The position numbers and the translations under genes were made by a program. The notes beneath the pieces were generated by a model. The model did not search any database and was not told the origin of the DNA. It was given only the letters and a program-made list of their open reading frames with translations. 64,000 nucleotides of DNA, from the sequence record OR608733.1; one strand, given 5' to 3'. Every line of letters begins with the position of its first letter. Within the stretch, counting starts at the first letter, position 1. Of the stretch, positions 4,278 through 18,187 are shown one piece after another.

Positions 4278-5153
<876 letters not shown>

Positions 5154-11912: not shown

Positions 11913-14156
11913 TCACGGCTTAAGATCAGCAAGCTTACCGTTGAACTGAGTTTCGCCCATGACTTTCTGGAAGCCAGTGATCTTGAACTCTAGTGCGAAC
12001 GGAATGTTGTTGACGTGTAGGTTGAACGGAATGGCCGCGATTTCGCGAGTAACCTGGTGACCACCACGGGTGATCGGTAGGTCAGCGATAACAGTAGATA
12101 CGTAGAAGAACTGACCCCAGGAGAGGATGTCGTTTTCTTGTTGTACTGCGCGGGTCGGAATTACAACTAGCTTACCATCGAATAGCTGGTTGTTGGTGGA
12201 AACGATATCGTACTTGAGATAAGCACCTAGAGTACGGTCGTCACCTTTAGTCATTAGATAGTTAGCAATCTCTTTGTCGGAGCAGAAGAGATACATCGGA
12301 GTTTCATCCTGGTTACCGGAGATAACACGGAAGGCAGCTTCAATGTTGGAATCACGGTGAGCCGGGAATAGCTCAGCTTTAACACAGTTTAGGATCGCAG
12401 CGCAAACGTCGTCCCAACGATCTTTAGACTTGATGGTGTCGATGACTTTCTCAAGATCTAGTTCTTTGTAACGATAGGTCGGACGCATTACAGCGGATAG
12501 TGCACCTTCGATGATACCAAACTTCGGACGGTTGTAACCATTGTGTACAACTTCACGTAGTTGAGCAAGGTAGTTAAGCATGCGCTTAACAGCGTTGTTG
12601 CTGTTACGGATGTTGGTGTTAACGGTTAGAGCTTTAACAACCTCACCCGGACCTTCATCGGTCATGGTGTCCATCGGTAGAGTTACAGGAGCGTGCATCG
12701 GGATCGGATGACGGAACTGTAGTGCACGGGTCTGTAGTAGGTGACCACGCTGACGACGGTTGGTGTTGGTGAAGCGAGTATCTAGTTCGAAACCGATAAC
12801 AGCTAGGTCAGTTAGCTGATCTAGAATAGCTTTAACAGCCGGGTCAGCATTATCCATTACTTGACCATCTTCGTTTAGAACTTTATCGACGTAAGTGTCG
12901 GTAGCACCAAACTTAGAATCGCCTTTGGATAGGCTGATAGTACCGCCGAAACCAACGCTTAGACGTAGGCTTAGTTTAGCAGTCTTAAGGTCGTTAATAA
13001 CGCCATCAGCTGAACCGTCGATGAAAGTGGTATCGCCACTAACAACAAGGTCATCGCTATCGAAACGGATAACTGCGTTCCGGGTATCACCAACTAGATC
13101 GGGCTGGAACACAGCGCGAGGTAGACGGTCAACCTTGAACTTAACAACTTTACCGCCGAGTAGAACGAATAGGTTCTTTAGACGACCAGCCGGATCAATG
13201 GTGTCAGAAACTTCAAGCATGCCACGCTGAATGAGTAGGTTAGCATTGGAGTTACCCATTAGATCAAGACGTACGTTCGCTTTTAGCGGAGCAGTAGTGA
13301 TAGTTAGGTTCTGCTCGTTCTTGATGGTGTACGGAGGAACAAGAGCCGGGTCTACGAAGAAGTCAGCATTGGAACCAGCCGGATCTAGGGCAGGAATTAG
13401 TGCAATGCTTTCGTCGTCGAGGATGGAAGGATCACGATAGGCTTCTACCATGTTCACTTCTTCGTTATCCATCTTAACGCCGGATACTTCGTGGTAAACG
13501 TCTTTCATTACAGCGATGTAAGGAAGAACCTGAACAACACCACCTTCAATCGGGTTGATAACGGTGGTCGGATAGATACGCTCAGCGAATTCATCCTGAC
13601 GGCTAGCAGCTAGGTTATAACCAATAGTTACAACACGGAAATCACGCTGTGACTTCTCGTTATAGTTCTCTAGGCCAACACCATTTTCGAATACTTGAAT
13701 GCCACCAGCGGGGCCATTGAACTGATGCTGTACAACCTTAACATGATCTTCATTAGAAGCTTTAGCTTTGGTAATACCACGTAGTGCACGGATATATTTA
13801 GTTTCATCAGCACAGGCGATAGCAGCCATGGTAGCAGCGGTGATCTGGTTCTCACGGACACGTTCTTCACGAGCACGTACTTGAGGATCACTGGAACTTA
13901 CTCGTTCGAAACCATAGTCGTTAACGAGCATTTGCATTTTGTTATAAATTGCAGCAGCATCTTGAACGTCGGTAGCTTGTACGGTACCGAAGTTTTCATG
14001 TGAAATGGTGCTAACAAGGGAACGACCTTGACTAACAACGCTGTCATTTAGACCAATTTCACTTTCTAGGCGGCCAATGAAATCTTCCATTGAGAAGACT
14101 TCGTATTTCTTTTCGCCTTTGTGTTTAAACAGTTCTCTTAGGGCATGTACGCTCAT
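11913..14156 (-). CDS. gp120: Major capsid protein
   Basis: 747 aa; N-terminus MSVHALRELFKHKGEKK recognised as the phiKZ MCP; S/G-x-E protease motifs in the propeptide; C-ending codon bias of a highly expressed gene. Confidence 0.95.
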   Translation of the reverse strand: MSVHALRELFKHKGEKKYEVFSMEDFIGRLESEIGLNDSVVSQGRSLVSTISHENFGTVQATDVQDAAAIYNKMQMLVNDYGFERVSSSDPQVRAREERVRENQITAATMAAIACADETKYIRALRGITKAKASNEDHVKVVQHQFNGPAGGIQVFENGVGLENYNEKSQRDFRVVTIGYNLAASRQDEFAERIYPTTVINPIEGGVVQVLPYIAVMKDVYHEVSGVKMDNEEVNMVEAYRDPSILDDESIALIPALDPAGSNADFFVDPALVPPYTIKNEQNLTITTAPLKANVRLDLMGNSNANLLIQRGMLEVSDTIDPAGRLKNLFVLLGGKVVKFKVDRLPRAVFQPDLVGDTRNAVIRFDSDDLVVSGDTTFIDGSADGVINDLKTAKLSLRLSVGFGGTISLSKGDSKFGATDTYVDKVLNEDGQVMDNADPAVKAILDQLTDLAVIGFELDTRFTNTNRRQRGHLLQTRALQFRHPIPMHAPVTLPMDTMTDEGPGEVVKALTVNTNIRNSNNAVKRMLNYLAQLREVVHNGYNRPKFGIIEGALSAVMRPTYRYKELDLEKVIDTIKSKDRWDDVCAAILNCVKAELFPAHRDSNIEAAFRVISGNQDETPMYLFCSDKEIANYLMTKGDDRTLGAYLKYDIVSTNNQLFDGKLVVIPTRAVQQENDILSWGQFFYVSTVIADLPITRGGHQVTREIAAIPFNLHVNNIPFALEFKITGFQKVMGETQFNGKLADLKP

Positions 14157-14228: not shown

Positions 14229-14762
14229 CTAGCAGCTCTCCAAATAATAGGTAAAAATTTGTGTTGACGCCACGGATTCACGTGGGCGGGTGTTCAACAT
14301 TTCATTTATCATACTATCAAAGAAAGTATGGTTAAGTTGAATTGAGACACGTCTAGGATCGCTACTTGCAATGTGCGCACTCTGCTGCACCGCAACCCAC
14401 AGATTCTCATCTACAGGATATAGGTAATAATCGTACACTAAATTACGGTTACCTGCATCCCTAAGTTCATTAGTCGCTAGGCGGCTCTCTAAACGATTGT
14501 GTAAATCCTTCATCTTAAATTGGTCAGGACCGTCTATTTCACCTAGCTCAGCAACTTTGATTATCGGGCTTACTGCTAACTTAATATCTAGTTTTTCTGG
14601 TAATAGAAAGGGGAAAGCAGTTAAAGCCTGATGTATCTCCGCAAGATCATTTACGGAGGTTTCGGAAACTATATAGTTGGTGTCTAACAATTTGTTAAAT
14701 TGTACACCTGCTGTTTTATATGATTCAAAAACAGCTTTTGGCATAACCAGAACTTGGGTCAT
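14229..14762 (-). CDS. gp119: Minor capsid / virion protein, gp119-like
   Basis: 177 aa, directly upstream of the MCP and downstream of the late promoter. Confidence 0.75.
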   Translation of the reverse strand: MTQVLVMPKAVFESYKTAGVQFNKLLDTNYIVSETSVNDLAEIHQALTAFPFLLPEKLDIKLAVSPIIKVAELGEIDGPDQFKMKDLHNRLESRLATNELRDAGNRNLVYDYYLYPVDENLWVAVQQSAHIASSDPRRVSIQLNHTFFDSMINEMLNTRPRESVASTQIFTYYLESC

Positions 14763-16873: not shown

Positions 16874-17110
16874 ATGTACTATGGTAATGTTTATATTATC
16901 TTTATTGGTGGTTTATTAATATTTATCCTAGGATTGGTATTTGGAGGAATACTGGGAGAAGAGAACAATAACGTATATAAACTCAAATCCCAACAATTTG
17001 AATACTGCGTTAAAAATAAACAATCAAAAAATAATGACAGTGAAAATATCCAAGTTATTAAAGTATGCGCAGAGTCTATTGTACTCCTATATCCGACTAA
17101 TGAAAAATAA
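16874..17110 (+). CDS. Small membrane protein
   Basis: 78 aa; hydrophobic run VYIIFIGGLLIFILGLVFGGILG; AAGGAG SD. Confidence 0.7.
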   Translation: MYYGNVYIIFIGGLLIFILGLVFGGILGEENNNVYKLKSQQFEYCVKNKQSKNNDSENIQVIKVCAESIVLLYPTNEK

Positions 17111-17140: not shown

Positions 17141-17375
17141 TGTCGTATGGCTAATATGCTAGTGAATAACGAATAAAATCGATTATAGAGCAAATTAGAA
17201 GGTATTAAAGGCATAAAGAAAGTCTATCTCTAGACTTATTATTTTTAATTAAAAAAATATAATCTATACTGTGTCTCCTTTTAGGGAGACAGTATGTATT
17301 AGCTAACGCTATTAGAATAATGCTAATATTGTTTATTATTAGAATAAGGATATACCTTCGGTATAGTTTATTATG

Positions 17376-17745
17376 AAATAAAAGCCCCTACGGGGCGATC
17401 CGATTCCTCAGTTCCACATTAGGTAAGATTCATGAGTAATATTTGATTACCAGTATTACTCAATGATACTGGTAATAATATACTAGATTATTAACAATAT
17501 GTATTGATCATTCTGATTAAGTCAAATTAGTTAATAAACAAATCAATTATCAACGAGTGATAACGGGTATTGATTACTAGCTAAAGAGATTAATTAGGAT
17601 ATCTACATGAGGAGTCGCTACCCCATGTATATCGGAGTGTCTCTTTAGCGGGAGACTTAACTCCACTTGGGAGCCGCTTTAGCGGGCGGCTCTCACTTAA
17701 ACAAAAAAAGAATTCAGATAAGTACCTCTCCTAAAGGAGAGGGGT
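17376..17745. ncRNA. Candidate structured non-coding RNA or structured DNA element (strand unresolved)
   Basis: At least seven stems in a region with no credible ORF; two hairpins share the loop TTTAGCGG and a third loop contains the complement CGCTA. Confidence 0.45.
17725..17742. terminator. Hairpin at the 3' end of the 101-aa gene
   Basis: CCTCTCC-TAAA-GGAGAGG. Confidence 0.7.
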
Positions 17746-17751
17746 TGTTTA

Positions 17752-18057
17752 TCATAGGCTTCTCCTTTCGGTTACATAGAACTTCTTCTGATCCATGTCA
17801 GTGTCTGTTACTATAAAATTGTCGAAGGGGTTGATGGATACGGCTAAACTTGCGTTGTTGACGTATCCTATTGTAGGGCCAGCCCAATAACCAATGAAGT
17901 TACCTTTACGATCTCGACATTGGATAACATTATCGGCTTGAGTTTTCGCAACCGACATGCTATGGGTTGATCCATCGGGTCTCTTGAAAAAGAAACCCAC
18001 TTCCTGCATTCTGTGCAGGTCAGGGCTAACATTGTTAGCGGTAACTGGAATTAACAT
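17752..18057 (-). CDS. Hypothetical protein, probably late and highly expressed
   Basis: 101 aa; AAGAGGAG SD; own structured leader starting near TATG at 18125-18122. Confidence 0.8.
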   Translation of the reverse strand: MLIPVTANNVSPDLHRMQEVGFFFKRPDGSTHSMSVAKTQADNVIQCRDRKGNFIGYWAGPTIGYVNNASLAVSINPFDNFIVTDTDMDQKKFYVTERRSL

Positions 18058-18126
18058 GATTGCTCCTCTTGTTAATCCAAGCCCACTTGGGCGAAAATGT
18101 TGAGTATTTTTTACTCAACGGCATAT

Positions 18127-18152
18127 AGCCCTACTGTTGCAGCAGTAGGGCT
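18127..18152. terminator. Hairpin (terminator or promoter-associated)
   Basis: AGCCCTACTG-TTGCAG-CAGTAGGGCT. Confidence 0.65.
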
Positions 18153-18187
18153 AATTCTTTTATTCTTAAATGTTTAACTGAATAAAT

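Follow-up and report, generated by a model that had tools for sequence, protein, structure and literature searches.

The window analysed here (64,000 nucleotides of sequence record OR608733.1) contains a 640-bp spacer, with PHIKZ117.3 (plus strand, ending at 17110) on its upstream side, in which a reading of the sequence alone had pointed out three neighbouring hairpins: two with one and the same 8-nt loop (TTTAGCGG) and one with a complementary loop. A 661-nt spacer sequence around these hairpins matches Pseudomonas phages 6B, 124.01 and others at 100% identity, and positions 114663-115324 of phiKZ (NC_004629, minus strand of phiKZ) at 98.5%. Because of this 98.5-100% identity to phiKZ-type genomes, we assigned the window to a Phikzvirus jumbo phage of the phiKZ type. 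The spacer also has the same position as in phiKZ, downstream of PHIKZ117.3 and upstream of PHIKZ_p40, with identical flanking genes. The hairpins are the 3' half of a published phiKZ non-coding RNA (ncRNA), named 5'UTR_p40, after the 5' untranslated region (5' UTR) of p40, or TU089.

Identity, strand and ends of the RNA

The sequence-only reading knew of no description of this element, which had in fact been published as 5'UTR_p40 (PMC8545117) and as TU089 (PMC10914365). Gerovac et al. (2021; PMC8545117) obtained two phiKZ ncRNA candidates from Grad-seq, one of which corresponds to the first 180 nt of the p40 5' UTR. Their northern blot showed a band of ~180 nt 10 min after infection, plus a longer species of ~880 nt. 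The RNA was abundant, sedimented in low-molecular-weight to 30S fractions, partly together with 30S subunits and partly with RNA polymerase fractions, and a convincing small open reading frame (ORF) was not found in it (PMC8545117). The supplement of Putzeys et al. (2024; PMC10914365; preprint 10.1101/2023.10.13.562163) lists P060 as a 'middle promoter', a class whose motif was described by Wicke (2021), with the transcription start site (TSS) at 114922(-); P060 was also detected by Wicke (2021). In the same supplement, the transcription termination site (TTS) T053 at 114725(-) has no intrinsic-terminator type from ARNold, TU089 is a gene-free unit of 197 nt whose entries are tied to the Gerovac RNA in Table S7, and the read-through unit TU088 (715 nt) ends at T051. 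A minority of phiKZ transcripts read through T053 as TU088.

When these coordinates were transferred by alignment, the TSS fell on window position 17501, the G of the TATG at 17498-17501, and T053 on 17698, 6 nt past the last hairpin (B2, see below). The published sequence upstream of P060 agrees with 17451-17501 except for 2 letters that are absent from the machine-read supplement text, and the northern probe JVO-18831 is the exact complement of plus-strand positions 17539-17567. Over the ncRNA, window and phiKZ differ at 4 of 198 positions (17630-17632, in the linker between hairpins A and B1, and 17638), and from B1 to the 3' end the two sequences are the same except at 17638. The fold energy that we computed for the phiKZ copy (-65.1 kcal/mol) equals the value in Table S7 of Putzeys et al. 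(-65.10 kcal/mol). Since the northern probe complements the plus strand and the published TSS and 3' end map to it, the RNA is read from the plus strand, a point that the sequence-only reading had left undecided. Its idea of a structured ncRNA with a discrete transcript is borne out by the phiKZ northern band and by the mapped TSS and 3' end, whereas neither of the RNA ends that it had considered on this strand, TATG at 17372 and a hairpin at 17725, is an end of this RNA. The expression data come from phiKZ; from the near-identity of the two sequences we infer that an RNA of ~180-200 nt is made by the window's own phage as well.

The features of the locus are the following:

17451-17500, plus strand: promoter P060, with TACT at 17481-17484 and TATG at 17498-17501
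17501-17698, plus strand: the whole ncRNA (5'UTR_p40/TU089), 197-198 nt, phiKZ ends mapped by alignment
17506-17603, plus strand: domain 1, a long imperfect AU-rich hairpin of the predicted fold, its tip (17547-17563) lying inside the probe site 17539-17567
17580-17589, plus strand: putative alternative-helix segment GCTAAAGAGA, a perfect 10-nt complement of 17640-17649 (5' strand of B1 and most of its loop)
17604-17629, plus strand: hairpin A, stem TACATG/CATGTA (17604-17609/17624-17629) with inner GG/CC, and AGTCGC(TA) in the loop
17634-17664, plus strand: hairpin B1, inner stem GTCTC/GAGAC (17639-17643/17652-17656), outer stem GGAGT/ACTCC (17634-17638/17660-17664), loop TTTAGCGG at 17644-17651
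17668-17695, plus strand: hairpin B2, GC-rich stem of 10-12 bp (17668-17677/17686-17695), loop TTTAGCGG at 17678-17685, 3'-terminal
17725-17757, either strand: canonical phiKZ-type terminator hairpin, CCTCTCC...GGAGAGG followed by GTTGTTTAT, between the 3' end of the ncRNA and the stop codon of ORF101
17752-18057, minus strand: ORF of 101 amino acids (ORF101, PHROG 25431) with a strong Shine-Dalgarno sequence, antisense to the TU088 read-through

The hairpins and a second locus with the same loop

The 198-nt RNA folds far more stably than shuffled sequences (z = -5.5). The three hairpins and their loops were found at the coordinates first proposed for them, and the same holds for the further stems at 17384-17396, 17446-17476, 17541-17575 and 17725-17742. 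Loop A contains AGTCGCTA at 17613-17620, and its CGCTA indeed complements TAGCG exactly. In the predicted fold, the loops of A, B1 and B2 are exposed; two U.G pairs close each B loop in RNAfold and leave UAGC, an arrangement possible on the plus strand only. In phiKZ, B1 loses the base pair G17639-C17656 (G to T). The stems of B1 and B2 had been described as unrelated; we observed instead a tandem duplication with a period of 34 nt, B1 and B2 being identical at 13 of 15 bases across the loop and the 3' strand. Two of their five inner pairs differ, both by compensatory double changes. Because of this duplication, the identity of the B1 and B2 loops taken alone is weak evidence for selection (p ~0.07, by our own count).

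The octamer TTTAGCGG is found at one other site in the terminator table of Putzeys et al., namely T003 (phiKZ 12,011, minus strand). At this second locus a hairpin that we call A' (GACAGTGT-AGTCGCGAAT-GCACTGTT) is followed by a hairpin B' (CCCCATTGG-TTTAGCGG-CCAATGGGG), and the RNA 3' end lies 4-6 nt later. B' differs from B1 in 5 of 5 inner pairs while the loop is identical; with the B hairpins aligned in register, the five inner pairs are changed on both sides and 96.7% of cells are paired. An AGTCGC-loop hairpin precedes the B hairpin at both loci, again with different stems in A and A', and the T003 module is also present in the PA1C-like 300-kb phages. The claim that the loop is under selection holds because TTTAGCGG recurs in a third hairpin, on an unrelated stem, at a second locus; the comparison of B1 with B2, on which it was originally based, is insufficient since these are tandem duplicates.

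In PaSz-1, a complete Phikzvirus genome of 279.5 kb, the octamer occurs 8-9 times over both strands, which is about the chance expectation. Three of these 8-9 copies form the loop of a hairpin whose stem has 5 bp or more (5(+5), 10 and 9 bp), as compared to 1.3% for octamers with 1-2 mismatches; genome-wide, such near-variant loops (1-2 mismatches) were found in hairpins at chance level. An AGTCGC-loop hairpin directly before a TTTAGCGG-loop hairpin is found at exactly two loci per Phikzvirus genome. Among orthologs of the second locus, B' shows one compensatory T-A to C-G change (OMKO1, PA7-Y12, SL2), and the A' stem two A-to-G changes after which pairing is kept only as G.U on the module strand. 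In T2P, U5 and phi9_PA9, A' is kept only up to AGTCGCGAAT, and unrelated sequence is found thereafter.

The first locus varies little. In an alignment of 12 Phikzvirus genomes the only variable sites were 17508, 17530, 17564, 17630-17632 (the A-B1 linker) and 17638. A protein-anchored scan of IMG/VR with the PHIKZ117.4 homolog, aimed at distant relatives, yielded only phage PA7. In the PA1C-like phages the ncRNA is absent from the first locus, and only 17331-17388 of the spacer is shared (~90%). This segment contains a UUCG-loop hairpin (ATACC-TTCG-GGTAT) followed by TTTATTATG, which resembles a terminator of the phiKZ type that overlaps with a TATG promoter motif; the searchable phiKZ tables give neither a TSS nor a TTS for it.

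Some other repeats and hairpins were observed in and around the element. The hairpin at 17271-17293 (CTGTGTCTCC-TTTTA-GGGAGACAG) has the GTCTC/GAGAC stem of B1 with a different, shorter loop, lies just downstream of an AT-rich TATAAT-like stretch and may be another decayed copy of a B hairpin. Positions 17457-17471, the loop of the hairpin at 17446-17476 (30-45 nt upstream of the TSS), are reverse-complemented in 30-1, SL2 and PA7 (TATTACTCAATGATA to TATCATTGAGTAATA), a 15-nt inversion at the centre of a palindrome just upstream of P060. The "second places" that BLAST gave in some records are probably due to this inverted loop in PA7, SL2 and 30-1 and not to a second copy. A scan of IMG/VR for two TTTAGCGG octamers 20-32 nt apart was used only as a background rate; among the 164 matches listed, none had both octamers in hairpins. 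In an unrelated viral contig (IMGVR_UViG_3300045918_000051, ~5100-5150) the octamer is looped on an 8-bp hairpin (GCGCCTTG-TTTAGCGG-CAAGGCGT), which may well be due to chance given the size of the collection. Besides the TTCG-loop terminators, PaSz-1 has a further hairpin that recurs ~6-7 times per genome; its stem, GCCCTCC, stays the same and its loop is CGCAATG or CGTAATG. In contrast to the B hairpins, whose stems differ, this one recurs as a whole.

Searches against known RNA families were negative. Rfam gave zero matches at the gathering threshold in the whole window, only noise at E <= 10 in 17200-17800 and, at the same E-value, only noise on the second locus of phiKZ; ARAGORN detected no tRNA or tmRNA. 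The idea of a tRNA-like D-loop/T-loop, left without model support, was discarded. A sponge for RsmA/CsrA, considered because of several GGA motifs, was also rejected: most GGAs are in stems, and the paralogous A' loop has none.

3'-end formation, antisense context and alternative readings

Both module loci coincide with mapped RNA 3' ends (T053, 6 nt past B2, and T003, 4-6 nt past B') that have no normal U tract, and ARNold calls neither of them intrinsic. B2 is followed by TCACTTAAAC, was missed by the terminator scan and lacks the immediate U tract which, together with a hairpin, defines an intrinsic (Rho-independent) terminator. The canonical phiKZ terminator motif, CCYCCCC-loop-GGGRRGG-YTTAT (Putzeys et al., 2024; PMC10914365), does not fit B1 or B2 but fits the hairpin at 17725-17757, which sits 30 nt downstream of the ncRNA 3' end. 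Given a B2 without U tract and a canonical terminator at this distance, the 3' end could equally have arisen by trimming to a stable hairpin.

Both loci are also small-ORF cassettes overlapped by antisense transcription. At the first one, ORF101 is intact in 47 of 47 Phikzvirus records, has 9 of its 11 differences from PaSz-1 at third codon positions, and is annotated as a gene in nine other genomes. RefSeq phiKZ instead has two coding sequences (CDSs) on the plus strand of the window, PHIKZ117.2 (p40) and PHIKZ117.1 (p39), which overlap 17752-18103; p39 has an in-frame stop in the window. ORF101 appears to be coding, and the p40 and p39 CDSs are probably not genes. Since ORF101 is intact, biased towards third-position changes and widely annotated, and p39 is interrupted, the read-through RNA is probably antisense to a real gene and the name "5'UTR" a misnomer. 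At the second locus, P005 (a middle promoter) and P004 (unclassified) are on the module strand and, judging from their coordinates, inside and antisense to an ORF024-like frame; the transcripts end at T004 or at the module (T003). PHIKZ024.1/024.2 and the old ORF024 are probably in the same annotation conflict as p40/p39 and ORF101. The leaders of ORF101 (18058-18170) and ORF024 (phiKZ 12,170-12,262) are paralogous, with a terminator hairpin, TATG, two hairpins with compensatory differences and a Shine-Dalgarno sequence; no BLASTP similarity was found between ORF101 and the ORF024-like protein of PA1C.

The explanation that we favour, with a probability of about 0.55, is that the known ncRNA carries a two-hairpin module that forms or stabilises 3' ends and whose loops are read by a putative partner. 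The B hairpin would form or protect the 3' end of middle-phase transcripts, either by stopping the phage RNA polymerase or, if transcription terminates at the canonical terminator 30 nt further on, by blocking subsequent 3'-to-5' trimming, and would thereby set the ratio between the 198-nt ncRNA and the antisense read-through. B1 would have arisen as a tandem duplicate of B2, and the invariant loops would serve as recognition surfaces. A protein would be a better candidate for the partner of the B loops than loop A, since these loops are fixed and loop A varies at a position required for pairing.

Several observations weigh against this explanation. As a good canonical terminator follows after 30 nt, there is no obvious need for B2, and T053 could equally represent true termination or processing. 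Covariation at the second locus amounts to one compensatory pair and is not significant, as 51 of 500 shuffles were as good. B' is missing in T2P, U5 and phi9_PA9, and in NK1 it is degraded (loop TTTAGCAG and stem mismatches); being lost or decayed in some phages, the module is dispensable at the second locus. No sense TSS is given for ORF101 in the ONT-cappable-seq tables, and the antisense relation may therefore have no target under laboratory conditions. Finally, we know of no protein that binds the module loops.

A broader version of the same idea, which we regard as quite unlikely, is that the pair formed by the AGUCGC-loop and the UUUAGCGG-loop hairpins is an unrecognised cis-acting RNA signal of phiKZ-like phages, read by a phage or host factor. 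Such a signal might make 3'-end formation by the phage's non-canonical RNA polymerase dependent on this factor, or serve in RNA sorting (retention in the phage nucleus as opposed to export). Small ORF cassettes with late promoters (ORF101, ORF024) would then be silenced by antisense RNA in the middle phase under the control of the module, whose recognised shape could include a loop-loop contact.

A loop-loop contact as the function in itself had been the proposal of the sequence-only reading: loop A (UCGCUA) would kiss the B1 or B2 loop (UAGCGG), either within one molecule, giving a compact or switchable fold, or between molecules, giving multimers. The match comprises 5 Watson-Crick pairs and 1 G.U (6 bp, -6.8 kcal/mol), an energy reached by 86 of 5000 random 14-nt loops of the same composition (1.7%), the predicted exposure of the three loops leaves them free for kissing, and in OMKO1 a C-to-U change in loop A' retains the pair as G.U. 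The complementarity was, on the other hand, picked post hoc among several loops, and the gap of only 4 nt between A and B1 would be awkward for an intramolecular kiss. In the paralog, with the B loop unchanged, the A loop reads CGCGA and not CGCTA (AGTCGCGAAT), which introduces a central G-A mismatch (-4.6 kcal/mol); the A'-B' duplex is weaker still in OMKO1 (-2.7 kcal/mol) and NK1 (-2.2 kcal/mol). With the B loop fixed while the A loop changes at a pairing position, pairing with A does not explain the conservation of the B loop. The first locus offers no covariation in favour of kissing and, being almost invariant, is uninformative in this respect. Moreover, the ncRNA was found in low-molecular-weight to 30S fractions, with no discrete multimer reported (PMC8545117). 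Support for kissing is thus weak, and as a function, multimerisation included, we consider it unlikely.

The segment at 17580-17589 (GCUAAAGAGA) suggests another internal pairing, in which it would leave domain 1 and pair with the 5' strand and loop of B1, remodelling the 3' half of the RNA and altering read-through or accessibility. This fold is only 3.1 kcal/mol above the minimum free energy (MFE) fold, accounts for ~5% of the ensemble and becomes the MFE fold with longer flanks; the segment can also form 7 bp with the B2 loop. Such a switch, however, leaves intact B2 (P = 0.999), the hairpin at the actual 3' end, has only a 5-bp equivalent at the second locus and no support from comparative variation at the first, and the 10-mer complement, for which ~0.02 are expected by chance within 198 nt, was found post hoc; we hold it to be quite improbable.

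The abundance of the ncRNA and its partial co-sedimentation with 30S subunits would suit a small RNA (sRNA) that acts in trans, with the loops as seeds on phage or host mRNAs. The gp119 mRNA could be one of these, as plus-strand positions 14472-14489, inside and antisense to the gp119 gene, carry the 18-nt AGTCGCTAGGCGGCTCTC, an exact junction of the 8 nt of loop A with the 10 nt of the B2 3' strand, and each genome has only two copies of the 10-mer. In the ncRNA, however, 65 nt separate the two parts of the complement, one of which is buried in the stem of highest stability; chance alone should give ~0.3-1 composite 8+10 matches per genome (our own estimate), and outside hairpins the octamer has chance frequency genome-wide, so that regulation of this kind appears very improbable. 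AGTCGCTAGGCGGCTCTC can also fold on itself (AGTCGC-TAG-GCGGCT) and sits exactly at the phiKZ RNA 3' end T055 (117934, minus strand); it could be due to chance, be related to the module as its third relative, or serve as a target for pairing.

It is improbable, too, that the element has no dedicated function. In this case the hairpins would be duplicated terminator-like remnants within an AT-rich spacer prone to recombination, and attenuated antisense transcription would yield the short RNA as a by-product. The recent tandem duplication of B1 and B2, the hairpin at 17271-17293 with the B1 stem and a different loop, the inverted loop of the neighbouring hairpin in some phages, the loss of B' in others and the absence of the whole ncRNA from the first locus of PA1C-like phages would all fit. 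This does not explain why the same 8-nt loop is on a fully different stem at the second locus and in PA1C-like phages, why 3 of 8-9 octamers are in hairpins against a 1.3% background, or why both modules coincide with mapped 3' ends.

An element acting as DNA is scarcely credible, be it an origin or priming signal of replication or a site bound by a protein, with hairpins in single-stranded DNA or the middle-promoter transcript as primer. T4 origins are a precedent for a middle-promoter transcript that serves as primer, and the spacer holds an untranslated transcript of this type, is AT-rich (28% GC at 17200-17599) with many inverted repeats and lies 650 bp from a DnaB-like helicase gene. Yet a discrete and abundant RNA ends at the hairpin, the stem changes at the second locus keep pairing only as G.U on one strand, this locus is not near replication genes, and the change in GC skew at the spacer merely tracks gene orientation, giving no origin signal. 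A 13-codon ORF on the plus strand (17607-17648, MRSRYPMYIGVSL), with an AGGA-N7-AUG start, spans hairpin A and has its TAG stop inside the B1 loop. Attenuation through a leader peptide encoded by it is implausible because phiKZ transcription takes place in the ribosome-free phage nucleus.

5'UTR_p40 is one of only two phiKZ ncRNAs from Grad-seq that were later confirmed by long-read transcriptomics, and its role is putative. An 8-nt loop that is constant on unrelated stems, beside an AGUCGC-loop hairpin and at 3' ends outside the standard terminator rules, provides an experimental handle. Should read-through really be under the control of the module, this would be a case of antisense gating in a phage that forms a nucleus. 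These points are modest and incremental, and the element is not a new kind of RNA.

Comparison with known systems

As a structured phage RNA with two loops able to pair, the ncRNA resembles phi29 pRNA, but the likeness concerns a possible mechanism only. The comparison, already drawn in the sequence-only reading, found no support in the Rfam pRNA model, which is unmatched, or in the paralog, where the loop pairing is not conserved; unlike pRNA, the RNA belongs to an unrelated jumbo myovirus, has a middle promoter and was seen 10 min into infection. To our knowledge, it has no link to packaging. CopA/CopT and RNA I/RNA II are similar in that loops are the sites of first contact, and the read-through is antisense to ORF101. 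The hairpins here lie outside the ORF101 overlap (ORF101 ends at 17752), unlike in those systems, and, unlike for CopA-like regulators, no opposite-strand TSS or TTS across 17501-17698 is given in the ONT-cappable-seq tables. We also know of no role of the ncRNA in replication such as those RNAs have.

The nut boxB of lambda (with the N protein) and the put sites of HK022 are hairpins in RNA that influence the polymerase during transcription or serve to recruit a factor. The resemblance is by analogy only, and lies in tandem leader hairpins with conserved loops and variable stems and in the partial sedimentation of the ncRNA with RNA polymerase fractions; there is no sequence similarity and no known factor, and the present hairpins mark 3' ends, not sites of antitermination.

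Closer are the sRNAs derived from 5' leaders by premature termination, of which Putzeys et al. (2024; PMC10914365) listed 29 candidates and in which a short stable RNA is likewise released at a hairpin with partial read-through. What sets the present RNA apart is that the downstream 'gene' is probably not a gene, that read-through runs antisense to ORF101 and that a U tract is missing at the hairpin.

The T003 module and its copy in PA1C-like phages have the same layout, with an AGTCGC-loop hairpin, a TTTAGCGG-loop hairpin 4-6 nt on and the 3' end another 4-6 nt later. T003 differs in its single B hairpin, entirely different stems, weaker A-B complementarity (AGTCGCGAAT) and the TTTTAT tract that follows, and in marking the 3' end of a 377-nt antisense RNA and not lying in a 5' leader.

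With respect to phiKZ 5'UTR_p40/TU089 the locus is orthologous, sharing promoter, TSS base, 3'-end hairpin and probe site, and nothing essential is different. The papers on this RNA give a 'two-stemmed' fold and suggest premature termination, without mention of the shared loop, the complementarity, the paralogous module or the doubt about p40/p39 (PMC8545117, PMC10914365). Literature searches on the octamer and on PHIKZ_p40 gave nothing relevant, and a description of the shared-loop two-hairpin module was not found in them. The RNA itself is already known; the shared-loop module and its link to unusual 3' ends are a small new lead.

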